From positions 3,906,001 through 3,970,000 of the forward strand of contig NW_024704765.1 of assembly GCF_018977255.1 (NCBI RefSeq): a stretch of 64,000 bases of DNA, read 5' to 3'. Below are positions 30,564 through 39,878 of the stretch, piece after piece. The position numbers and the translations under genes were made by a program. The notes under the pieces are model-generated. The model saw only the letters and a program-made list of their open reading frames with translations. It did no database searches and had not been told where the DNA came from. The stretch is from Callorhinchus milii (Eukaryota). Numbering within the stretch: position 1 is the first letter of the stretch; every line of letters starts with the position of its first letter.

Positions 30564-33500
30564 TCAGTCGCAGTTCACAAAGCCAGGCAGAAGCTCGGAC
30601 TTTTCCTGTTGTCTGTTTTCGGGCTCAGCACACGTCAGGTTGGTTCTGGGAATAGAGGACTCTGATTCAATCATTGGCTCTCCATTGAATCCCTGGTCTG
30701 TGTGTCTTCCAGGCAGAGTCCCATTCTCAGAATTAGGGCTGTTATTGTGCGAGAATTCACTGGAGTGCAGCGATGTCGACAACGCCAGCTGGCTGTCAGC
30801 TTTCTGTGCAAAGTCACTCCTGACTCCTGGGTGCCCATTTGCACTGGACTCCATGATAGAGAGTGGCGTGGTCCTGTTGCTCGGCGTCTGAATGATAGAG
30901 CTGGCACCTGACTGTAAAGAAATAAAGGACAAAGTTGACTCAACACTGTCCAAAACTGCTATGTATCTAGCTTGTTCTCTTTGACATTTTGAGTTGGATA
31001 TGTTTGGCTTCAAATGGGCCCATCTAGAATTATAATGATAACAATACTTGCATTTGATATAGTGCCTTATCACGTCTTTGAGACGTCTCAAAGCACTTCA
31101 CAGAATATACTGTAAAATGAGTTGATTATATTTGTGGGCAAAACACAGCAGCCAATTGCGCCTGCAGGAAATGAAGCAAGCAGTCTTTTTAGGGGCTGTT
31201 TTAGTGACAAGAAGATTCTTAAACATGGATTGTGGAATGACAGATGCACAAGATATTCTGAAATGGTTTTAATAAGTTTTTAAGTATGAAACAATTCCAG
31301 AATCTTCTAGGTGATCTCTCTCGTGTCACATTTCCTAAACACAATAAAAATGTCTGATAAAGATTACTTTGTCTGTCCGAAAAACCTCAGGCACCTGGGC
31401 CAATGGATTGACTCCAATGTATTTAGGAGTGAGACCCAGTTGAGCCTGCTGATAACTGTGTCATTAAATCAGATCACTGTGGGAAGCTGTGATCTCTGAG
31501 GTTTGCAAACCCCTTGACTATCTTGGGAAATGTGTGTCTAATTTATTTCTTTTGGTCCTGTGTGATGTGGCTCTCGTTTTGATATTATCTGATTGAATTG
31601 TTCTGATTGTTCTATTTGCTTTGATCACTCGTTGCTGTGTTTTTTCACGCTCATCATATAGTTAATTTTGTATTCTTCCTCCATTGTGCTTCACTGACAC
31701 TCAAACTGGTCACATTCAGTGCAGCACAAACAACATGTACATCCTGTAATCCAGTCTTGGAGCACCATCTGGTGGAAGTATCATTAATAGGTTCTACAGA
31801 AAAGGTTGTCCACTGATTACAGTGCTAACTGTAATTTCCCTAGCAGTTGTCCTTTAATAAATACATGATAATGATATTCCTTGCATTCGATGTAGAAATG
31901 TCACAAAGTGCTTCAACAATATTTGCTATCACATGTAGTGATTGTATTTGTAGTCAGCCAATTTGCACACAGCAAGTCATAAAGTGAGTGACACATTTAC
32001 GGTAAGGTTTTCTGTTTGACCAGGGTAGCAGAAGAAACTCCATCCTCTTTTCAGATAGTGTCCAGAGATTGTTAATGGCCACCTGAATAGGTAAGCGGAC
32101 CTCAGGCCACTTCTTCCTGCAGATTTCTTAATCAAGCATGTTTCTCCGCCTCGCCCCGTCCCTCCCCACCTTCAAATCCCACCTAAAGACCTTCCTTTTT
32201 GATCATGCTTACAGACACCTCCCCCCTCCCTATCCCCCTGGCTCGTTGTCAGACTCTGCCACTGTGAAGAGCTCTGGAACGCTACCCCGTGTGAATGGCG
32301 CTATATAAATGCACCTTGTTCTTGTGAGTTACTGTTGTAGATTATGTATGCATGAGGGTGAAATGTGCCATTTGTTTGAATTGAGCAGTTTGTGCTGAAC
32401 TTTCACAGGTGGTAAATACAATGTAAATGCAATGCTATATATTATGCTGAGAGTTAAATCCCTTTCTCTTTCACAGTTGCTATTGCAGATGGTAGCACTG
32501 AGCCCCTATTGCACATACCTGCTGTATGGATGAGATGCTGTCCCCATTCTCATTTACCTTCCTTGGTCGTGGAATCCAGTGACAGACAAGACTGTCATTT
32601 TGAACACTGTAGTTTTTGTTCCCAATGAGCCAATATGTTTTCATTTTGCCCTTTCCCTGTTAGAAAGGAGAGATAACCAGAACTGTTTAGAGGATGTAAA
32701 CAAAGTTTGAATGAAATGAAATATAAACTCAAAGGTCTCTTTACGAGAACCAGAACCACTGCCATTTACCTTGACCTCAGTTTCTCCTCGGGGTTCAATA
32801 TCATAAGCATCATCTTTGACCAGGGCACAGAAGGTAACAGAGCTAATGTGGATTTTCTGGGCTGCAAAAGAGGCACAAGATGTAATTCTGTACAGTGGCT
32901 TAAACCACATGGTACAGTTCCATAGTACAGATCAGGATCAGACCTCGGAATGCCTTAATTTCTAATCATACTACGTTGTGGTGACTTACGCAGACTGGTG
33001 GATTCCATGCGAGATGCAGTATTTACAGTATCTCCAAAAAGGCAATAGCGAGGCATTTTGTAGCCAACCACTCCAGCCACACAGGGACCTACACACAGGA
33101 ACAGTGTGGCACATATTAATATCAGAGGTCAAATGTAACATAATGTATAATATCAGACTGCGAGGGGATATTTGAAAGCTCTTTTGTGATTTCTGGACTC
33201 AGATTTTATTCAAGCTTCATTCTCCGGCAGTATTACATTCCCAGAACTCTTTGCATTACCAAGATTACAACAACAACTTGCATTTATATAGCGCCCCTCA
33301 CGCAGGGTAGCGTCCCAGGGCTCTTAACCTATTACCACTGAACTATTCAGTGTGCTGCGTCTGTGTCCTCTGTGCAGTACAAACCTGTGTGAACGCCAGC
33401 CCTCAGCTGCAGCCTGTCATTTGGCATGTGAGGAATTGGCACCTGCCGTACAGCTGCTACCAGATCCAGGGCCATTTTAGCAATCTCGTCAGCGTGCTTG

Positions 33501-39500: not shown

Positions 39501-39878
39501 ACACTCACTCACGCACACACTCACACACTCACTCACACACTCACTAACATTACACACTCACTCACACACTCTCACATTCACTCTCTCTCTCTCTCACACA
39601 CACACACACACAGAACGACTTTATAATACCATCTATTCTGCTGTTCTCACTCGAAAAATCCTCCTGTGGTCCCGTTTCGTTTCGTTTCATTTCATTCCAT
39701 TCGGTCAGTTATTTACCTGTGACAATCACAGAGGGTATCCGAGTCCTCGGCTCCTGTCTTTCCGGACACATTGACTGCCCTGAGGGGGGAGTGGGGCGAC
39801 TGTCCTTCAGCTTTAGCTGCAGAGGAGGGGGGGTCACAGGCCCTGTCCTGTCTGTTGGCTGCGGACATCAGCAACACA
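30564..39878 (-). CDS. Two-TM, kinase-less membrane guanylyl cyclase with NIT-like sensor domain (at least ~760 aa if the frameshift is repaired). Exons 39878(ATG 39868)-39717, 37422-36283, 34266-34132, 33559-33385, 33088-32990, 32861-32770, 32656-32519, 30911-30564
   Basis: All junctions are GT/AG and phase-compatible. Catalytic motifs: [94 protein letters not shown]. They are preceded by the signalling helix [21 protein letters not shown] and [20 protein letters not shown]. One frameshift lies between 36720 and 36837. Confidence 0.85.
32990..34266 (-). CDS. Guanylyl cyclase catalytic-core exons (34266-34132, 33559-33385, 33088-32990)
   Basis: Both metal-binding Asp (FSDIVG, IGDAY), the guanine-specifying Glu (KVETIG) and Cys (RYCLFG), and the transition-state Asn/Arg (VNTASR) are present. 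Confidence 0.95.
35863..36225. repeat. Low-complexity CA/C-rich then G-rich tract in the GC intron
   Basis: (cacacacagccccccc)n-type repeats followed by G runs. Confidence 0.85.
36283..37422 (-). CDS. Large exon of the guanylyl cyclase gene: TM1, ectodomain, TM2, coiled coil (contains apparent 1-nt frameshift)
   Basis: Acceptor ttcctcag before 37422 (phase 2, AG|A=Arg from the upstream exon) and donor CAG|GTAAAA at 36283. The two overlapping ORFs 36717-37373 and 36232-36750 are in different frames. The 1140-nt exon is 1 nt short of preserving phase. Confidence 0.8.
39072..39612. repeat. (CTCA/CA)n microsatellite interrupted by assembly gaps (38924-39071, 39211-39461)
   Basis: Seen directly. 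Confidence 0.95.

Follow-up and report, generated by a model that had tools for sequence, protein, structure and literature searches.

A kinase-less guanylyl cyclase gene of Callorhinchus milii with two transmembrane segments and a sensor domain predicted to resemble NIT domains

We analysed a stretch of 64,000 nucleotides (nt) from Callorhinchus milii (contig NW_024704765.1 of assembly GCF_018977255.1, positions 3,906,001 to 3,970,000 of the forward strand), referred to as the window and numbered from its first letter. Between positions 39868 and 30567, its minus strand carries a gene for a membrane-bound guanylyl cyclase (GC) in eight exons, all bounded by GT-AG sites and joined in compatible phases throughout (Table 1). 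The encoded protein comprises, in this order, a short cytoplasmic N-terminus, a first transmembrane segment (TM1), an ectodomain rich in cysteines and glycosylation sequons, a second transmembrane segment (TM2), a signalling helix, a class III guanylyl cyclase domain and a serine-rich tail. The gene is an intact orthologue of a vertebrate gene family that has so far remained unstudied.

Coding letters of the window add up to 2276, one below a multiple of three; with one extra letter, present in sequencing runs described below, they make 2277, equal to 759 codons, compared with 766-771 codons in orthologues from ray and shark. Across the eight exons, neither stops nor broken splice sites were found other than the frameshift in exon 2. 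Both runs of N within intron 1 leave the coding letters unaffected, and no reading frame extends across either of them. The codon shared by exons 1 and 2 (two bases plus one base) would encode Arg, likewise in shark and ray proteins (...LCD..R/C.APP). Assignment of exon 1 is the weakest part of the gene model. BLASTP of this exon against the basking-shark orthologue gave only an 8-residue match (E 0.10) and none at 1e-3; its support comes from the shared MSAA start, from the SD(S/T)LCD..RC.APP junction recognized by eye in shark and ray N-termini, from the canonical donor and from the phase. A sequence-only reading of the window, made from the letters without database searches, had placed the start of the gene at 39878, whereas the start codon that can be supported is the one at 39868.

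Table 1. Positions of the cyclase gene, its parts and neighbouring genes in the window.
Feature	Position	Strand	Remarks
Exon 1	39717..39868	-	ATG at 39868; 50 codons + 2 bases (MSAANRQ...TLCDCH); donor AG/gtaaat; cytoplasmic N-terminus
Intron 1	39716-37423	-	between exon 1 and exon 2; contains both N runs
Assembly gaps	38924-39071 and 39211-39461		two N runs within intron 1
Exon 2	36283..37422	-	acceptor ...cctcag/A, donor CAG/gtaaaa; 1140 nt; TM1, ectodomain, TM2 and signalling helix to ...AESYEQ
Basic motif RTVRRI	37391-37374	-	ahead of TM1
TM1	37323..37376	-	mean Kyte-Doolittle value over 19 residues 2.07; signal-anchor, N-terminus inside the cell
Ectodomain	36508..37322	-	~269 residues, six Cys, five N-glycosylation sequons; all-helical in orthologue models
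Ectodomain motifs	37235-37206 and 36896-36849	-	LQxxR-type and DWxDVxSxR-type helices
Frameshift site	36788-36791	-	net loss of one letter; in the assembly, exon 2 thereby falls into two frames
TM2	36454..36507	-	Kyte-Doolittle value 2.36
Signalling helix/coiled coil	36283..36447	-	matches last ~38 positions of Pfam HNOBA, E 9.5e-06
Exon 3	34132..34266	-	ends ...SYDVYK; PF00211 E 6.6e-15
Exon 4	33385..33559	-	ends ...LRAGVHT(G); PF00211 E 7.9e-16; contig of run X7 stops at its donor
Exon 5	32990..33088	-	begins (G); PF00211 E 1.3e-14
Exon 6	32770..32861	-	begins (P); alignable with orthologues
Exon 7	32519..32656	-	matches P0001 and P0022
Exon 8	30564..30911	-	coding 30911-30567, stop 30566-30564; Ser-rich tail
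DUF2152 (KIAA2013-type) gene	47021-50334	-	two large exons
CNP-type natriuretic peptide exon	5763-5813	-	ring followed by stop

Basic residues stand on the cytoplasmic sides of both transmembrane segments. We regard TM1 as a transmembrane segment and not as a signal peptide, because the corresponding hydrophobic segment lies at about residue 76 in orthologues. An alternative start at MAVCLL..., in good Kozak context at 37373, would convert this segment into a signal peptide; it was rejected, as orthologues possess about 75 conserved residues ahead of it. Judged by its cysteines and sequons, the ectodomain is probably glycosylated and disulphide-bonded. The HNOBA match of the signalling helix is limited to positions 176-216 of the 216-position model, without any match to H-NOX, and within the motif LLHQML of this helix the residues H, Q and M are invariant across the family.

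All peptides quoted by the sequence-only reading were located in the window, on its minus strand. Its six cysteines and the sequons NGT, NQS, NKT, NFS and NDS are indeed present between TM1 and TM2; the length of about 290 residues given for this domain has to be reduced to the value in Table 1. The kinase-less layout that it described, two transmembrane segments followed by a helix and a GC domain, is seen in the window and recurs in full-length orthologues.

At its very end the serine-rich tail carries the motif (E/S)LLPG(F/A)V plus 3-4 residues (30567-30600), conserved in four orthologues (P0001, P0007, P0013 and P0022). A stretch of 13 residues directly after the cyclase domain is conserved as well, and the tail, which P0001, P0022 and P0007 also possess, is otherwise variable.

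Identity of the catalytic domain was established by a Pfam search performed exon by exon. Exons 3, 4 and 5, each searched apart, match PF00211, and the orthologue P0001 covers positions 1-182 of 183 of this model with an E value of 4.3e-70. Catalytic motifs of the GC type are legible in the window sequence, so that the GC domain proposed by the sequence-only reading is borne out both by the Pfam match and by the motifs themselves. Exon 3 contains what we take to be the first metal-binding Asp motif; exon 4 presumably provides the Glu of guanine recognition together with the second Asp, and exon 5 the assumed Cys of guanine recognition and the Asn and Arg of catalysis. With these roles, assigned from general knowledge of the enzyme class, all motifs of a putatively active, guanine-specific class III cyclase are present. 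When the family profile was compared with PDB chains, the best scores were obtained for NPR-A (1.5e-104) and GC-C (2.3e-84), soluble GCs following at about 1e-55.

Next, we examined the distribution of the family. A HMMER search with the first ectodomain piece of the window returned 16 proteins at E<=0.001. At the top, with E 3.1e-41 and 46% identity, stands an "uncharacterized protein" of 766 aa from the stingray Hemitrygon akajei; its hydrophobic segment lies at residue 76. Residues 76-425 of this stingray protein, used as a query in turn, gave 217 matches at E<=0.001, the best 120 of which provided the taxa, names and domains reported here. These 120 are all from vertebrates and include sharks, rays, sturgeons, bichir, gar, bowfin and many teleosts, and further frogs, a caecilian, turtles, alligator, lizards, snakes, birds and a wallaby. 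Closest to the window is the basking shark (Cetorhinus) protein P0022, with 53% and 69% identity over two pieces of exon 2. All full-length members share the same layout, ...SYE(Q) running straight into VTIFFSD, and no kinase, ANF-receptor or H-NOX family was found, either in the 16 members scanned or in a list for 71 members that gives 25 of 35 families. One of the 16 HMMER matches, a 1208-aa bacterial repeat protein with 14 matching stretches (P0004), was dropped as a spurious low-complexity match, and a 154-aa fragment (P0016) and a fusion (P0120) were left out of alignments A2-A4.

Among the 120 best matches listed there is no placental or monotreme member. A search with the wallaby protein yielded koala and opossum next, followed by turtles at 63% identity. 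Since a placental orthologue should outrank reptiles in this search, loss of the gene in placentals is likely, though not proven.

Database names given to family members contradict one another. Besides "uncharacterized", they include adenylate cyclase type 2/7/9, speract receptor-like, gcy-22-like and daf-11, as well as atrial natriuretic peptide (ANP) receptor 1/2, retinal GC 1-like and soluble GC beta-2; one teleost member is labelled Si:ch211-215j19.12, after the zebrafish gene name si:ch211-215j19.12. In databases, the family is either left uncharacterized or misnamed.

The frameshift already mentioned in that reading is present in the assembly, as a net loss of one letter in exon 2. The frame changes between ...PEDHQM and WQQIITSLN..., and a stop follows 24 codons past the slip. 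Contigs of four runs (X1, X2, X5 and X7) were compared with window positions 32400-37500; X1 and X7 do not cover the frameshift site. Run X2 (study P1) has an extra A behind 36788 at a depth of 9.47 of 9.47, and run X5 (study P2) an extra G behind 36790 at a depth of 3.2 of 3.2. The longer form is therefore found in both runs that cover the site, which come from two studies. Either extra letter turns exon 2 into a single frame of 380 codons without a stop, the codon concerned encoding Val in X2 and Ala in X5. Because this codon differs between the two runs, we suggest that the slip arose at a heterozygous site. Exonic single-letter differences between individuals, at 32651, 36649, 36694 and 37083, are synonymous in all four cases. 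The most plausible interpretation of the frameshift is a slip of the assembly at a heterozygous site, or else a rare allele at a polymorphic codon, and not the mark of a pseudogene. A short intron at this place was rejected, since candidate GT...AG spans measure only 20 to 41 nt and the reads account for the shift.

A hint of a spliced transcript comes from run X7, whose identity as RNA is only a guess. This run contains a 157-nt contig (depth 2.5) whose first 102 letters lie on 33484-33383, stopping at the donor of exon 4. Its bin depths are 0.86 for 33426-33596, 0.04 for 33084-33254 and 0.76 for 32913-33083. Exactly these values are expected if the other 55 letters lie on 33086-33032, at the start of exon 5 (2.5 multiplied by 59, 3 and 52, each divided by 171); the joint between exons 4 and 5 is thus a matter of arithmetic from bin depths and does not appear among the joints listed. 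In X7 there is depth in the bin of exon 6 as well, and none in the readable intron bins. As all runs were examined as contigs, evidence of expression is thin.

Intron 2 consists of 2 kb of repeats. At 34452-35135 (within intron 2), 33255-33425 and 33939-34109, summed contig depth rises to about 2.4 million, in all four runs, with hundreds of false joints; these very deep intron stretches are high-copy interspersed repeats. A low-complexity tract rich in GT/CA and in C occupies 35860-36230, where six letters are inserted at 35874 in run X2. At 1360-1956 and 39200-39510, the flanks of the N runs are of the same GT/CA-rich and C-rich low-complexity kind, the gaps falling within such tracts.

We now turn to the ectodomain. 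NasR is a bacterial antiterminator responsive to nitrate and nitrite, and the fold of NIT (nitrate/nitrite-sensing) domains, as seen in NasR (PDB 4AKK), is made up of a pair of four-helix bundles. Two relatives of the window protein were modelled. The first model represents a 368-aa relative confined to exon 2 (P0002), folded by AF2 with an alignment of 124 sequences (pLDDT 84.4, pTM 0.74). It is all-helical and contains one unbroken helix, residues 237-329, extending from the last helix of the ectodomain by way of TM2 into the coiled coil. Compared with 48,161 PDB chains, its best match is NasR (4akk_B), with Z 11.8 and a root-mean-square deviation of 5.2 for 229 residues over model positions 1-268; the runner-up, a flagellin, reaches Z 9.1 and lies 2.7 Z below NasR. 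The second model is that of a cyprinid-like member (P0011), 35% identical to P0002 (pLDDT 80.2). Here, 4akk_B takes rank 6 with Z 9.1, and its alignment of 224 residues is the longest among the 50 rows shown. For both models, NasR is aligned over chain positions 9-287 and is the only match to span the whole ectodomain, at a sequence identity of about 10-11%.

Similarity of language-model features leads to the same family. When residues 1-270 of P0002 were submitted to the ESM Atlas, the three nearest named clusters all belonged to PF08376, the Pfam NIT family (0.89, 0.87 and 0.87), and the ten best named matches were without exception within the PF08376 family or its clan.

NIT domains have a motif of the LQxERG type. 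The family alignment has an LQxxR motif, with L40, Q41 and R44 conserved at 91, 94 and 87%; in rays, LQNERG or LQEERG occupies this position. A further helix, W-x-D-V-x-S-x-R...E, is conserved at 98, 91, 70 and 89% (W150, D152 and E164 accounting for 98, 91 and 89%). The two motif helices of the window retain Q, R, W, D, R and E. Moroz et al. (PMC7400543) mention a pair of conserved arginines at the interface of NIT bundles.

Several observations weigh against a NIT assignment and have to be set beside this evidence. Both Z values remain under about 13, the line below which the comparison tool itself advises caution for helical bundles, as a common arrangement of helices may suffice to produce them. 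Five generic long-helix matches, with alignments of 84-98 residues, lie within 1 Z of NasR in the second model. At 0.89, the Atlas score falls short of 0.9 and is rated "a lead only"; with the window's own piece, the best score is 0.88 and belongs to unnamed clusters. In the window, the motif is FQEDRS and lacks the Gly that rays have. Sequence profiles are negative: PF08376 gave no match at E<=10 in 16 sequences, is missing from the 25 of 35 families displayed for 71 members, and occurs as a precomputed domain in none of the best 120 of 217 relatives. The family profile, run against the PDB at E<=10, finds cyclase chains only and no NasR chain, and Foldseek against the PDB gives nothing at E<=0.001, PilJ chains, with very low TM-scores, occupying ranks 10 and 50. 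Searches with pieces of the window were equally negative, as Pfam detected no NIT match in its exon pieces and a PDB sequence search with its ectodomain piece returned no match at E<=10.

As modelled, the ectodomain resembles the NIT domain of NasR by fold and by feature similarity, and not by sequence profile. The resemblance to NIT domains is probably real, but it does not extend to formal membership of the Pfam family. The guess of a NIT-like ectodomain made by the sequence-only reading is supported, with a reservation concerning Pfam. Predicted fold (NasR at ranks 1 and 6), language-model features and the LQxxR motif speak for it, and the Pfam NIT model, which that reading had named as a check, matched no member. 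Complete absence of NIT or helical-bundle similarity, which the same reading would have counted as part of a refutation, is not what we see.

According to textbooks, vertebrates have two kinds of guanylyl cyclases. The window protein shares with the receptor type (NPR-A/B and GC-C to GC-G) the coiled coil and the catalytic domain, which are most similar to theirs, and probably also forms a homodimer; it differs from them in having no ANF-receptor ectodomain, no kinase-homology domain, and two transmembrane segments instead of one. With the soluble GUCY1 alpha/beta subunits it has in common a class III GC domain preceded by a helix that matches the end of HNOBA. Unlike them, it possesses neither H-NOX nor the PAS-like body of HNOBA, is a membrane protein, and its profile score against them is far lower (see above). 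Because the defining domains of both kinds were tested for and are absent, the protein is neither a classical receptor GC nor a soluble GC, just as the sequence-only reading had stated. NasR offers the best structural match to the ectodomain model; NasR itself, however, is cytoplasmic and carries an ANTAR RNA-binding domain, whereas the window protein is a membrane cyclase, and no sequence-profile match connects the two.

Invertebrate guanylyl cyclases with NIT domains (NIT-GCs) are the closest in organization. Cyclases of this type were reported from insects and sea urchins (Anantharaman et al. 2006, PMC1592074) and later from placozoans and many invertebrates, with the remark that "vertebrates lost NIT domains" (Moroz et al. 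2020, PMC7400543); Jokura et al. (bioRxiv 10.1101/2023.08.02.551600) likewise describe them as absent from Chordata. In both groups the sensor lies between two transmembrane segments, a signalling helix and a C-terminal class III GC domain are present, and a kinase-homology domain is absent. They differ in that the vertebrate members scanned are unmatched by the Pfam NIT model and have five to six conserved cysteines in the ectodomain. Since Pfam membership fails despite the layout and the probable fold, we place the family as a divergent variant and not as a member of the NIT-GCs. Our literature search found no paper on a vertebrate NIT-GC member or on ch211-215j19.12, the supplementary trees and lists of sequences that accompany PMC7400543 and the Jokura preprint, which may hold chordate sequences, being outside this search. 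The available part of PMC1435932 contains no mention of a kinase-less vertebrate cyclase.

In our opinion, the gene is probably an intact gene for a divergent vertebrate NIT-type cyclase, in a family descended from invertebrate NIT-GCs. The most serious competitor, which we consider unlikely, accepts the architecture as real and regards the ectodomain as a vertebrate-specific or unrelated sensor made of two four-helix bundles, not homologous to NIT; the ancestor of the family would then have been a receptor-type cyclase in which the kinase-homology domain was lost and a new sensor acquired. It would account easily for the failure of PF08376 in every member scanned, for the absence of NasR from the sequence-profile search and of any significant Foldseek match, for Z values under the helical caution line with NasR only at rank 6 in the second model, and for the preference of the catalytic domain for NPR-A and GC-C. 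It leaves unexplained why NasR, of all the chains compared, comes first for the first model by a clear distance, why NasR alone covers the whole ectodomain in both models, and why independent language-model features return NIT clusters as the best named matches. The LQxxR motif, moreover, is conserved where NIT domains have LQxERG. The order of transmembrane segment, sensor, transmembrane segment, helix and cyclase is also that of NIT-GCs (PMC7400543). As for the catalytic domain, its best score against NPR-A does not argue against NIT-GC ancestry, because Moroz et al. (PMC7400543) place the catalytic domains of NIT-GCs in the ANP-receptor group too.

Two simpler explanations would deprive the gene of its peculiarity altogether. 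If the frameshift made it a pseudogene in C. milii, the two frames of exon 2 and the stop soon after the slip would be genuine; yet the frame is reopened by an extra letter in both runs that cover the site, the eight exons have no further stop or damaged splice site, all four exonic differences are synonymous, and a spliced contig of exons 4 and 5 was deduced in the presumed RNA run, so we consider decay of the gene very improbable. The transcript evidence that enters this argument consists of one 157-nt contig from a run only guessed to be RNA, with no X7 cover of exons 2, 3 and 7, and this counts against our preferred explanation. Even less credible, to the point of being nearly negligible, is an ordinary receptor GC whose ligand-binding and kinase-homology exons were missed or fell into gaps. 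The repeats that fill intron 2 and the two N gaps upstream of exon 2 would offer room for such exons. Full-length orthologues of many classes, however, join ...SYEQ to VTIFFSD and start about 75 residues before TM1, the domain families shown for members include neither ANF-receptor nor kinase, and a single exon, exon 2, reaches from TM1 to the coiled coil.

Supposing that the family is indeed a divergent vertebrate descendant of invertebrate NIT-GCs, its mode of action can be sketched. The protein would work as a homodimer, with a small ligand bound between the two four-helix bundles of the ectodomain. Movement evoked by the ligand could travel along the single continuous helix from the ectodomain through TM2 to the signalling helix and there switch on synthesis of cyclic GMP (cGMP). 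NIT domains of bacteria are associated with nitrate and nitrite, and our guess is that the ligand might be nitrate, nitrite or another species derived from nitric oxide (NO). Activation by a shift of the helix has been proposed for other receptors with signalling helices (S-helices; PMC1592074), and NIT-GC1 of Platynereis produces cGMP after addition of an NO donor in a manner that requires its NIT domain (bioRxiv 10.1101/2023.08.02.551600).

The gene represents a third kind of vertebrate GC, with the layout of NIT-GCs and a predicted sensor fold similar to that of NasR, conserved across most vertebrate classes. A bolder proposal, which we put forward tentatively and with more doubt than confidence, is that NIT-type GCs were not lost in jawed vertebrates at all: a descendant of divergent sequence would persist in groups ranging from cartilaginous fishes to marsupials, with apparent loss in placentals, and would serve as a cell-surface receptor that converts extracellular nitrate, nitrite or NO-derived species into a cGMP signal. 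If true, it would constitute a third vertebrate route to cGMP, beside the natriuretic-peptide/GUCY2 receptors and the haem-based soluble cyclases. A sensor that reads nitrogen oxides would provide fish, frogs, reptiles and birds with a haem-independent receptor for the nitrate-nitrite-NO pathway, and apparent absence from placentals would explain why the family has been overlooked.

Finally, we inspected the neighbourhood of the gene. The cyclase gene is situated between a KIAA2013-like gene and a gene for a CNP-type natriuretic peptide. The former (Pfam DUF2152, E 9.5e-89 and 3.1e-153 for its two exons) lies just upstream of the cyclase on the same strand. A gene model of the green turtle Chelonia mydas (P0048) contains DUF2152 fused with the cyclase, a sign of conserved linkage and of merged annotation; the linkage is therefore old and the locus truly vertebrate. 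The latter was the one exon found by a natriuretic peptide pattern search of the window; it encodes the ring CFGGKLDRIGAMSDLGC and lies about 25 kb downstream of the cyclase, also on the same strand. Elsewhere in the window, two copies of a repeat, at 18592-18924 on the plus strand and 54503-54970 on the minus strand, stand in opposite orientation and have near-identical open reading frame translations (local alignment score 261 of 333).

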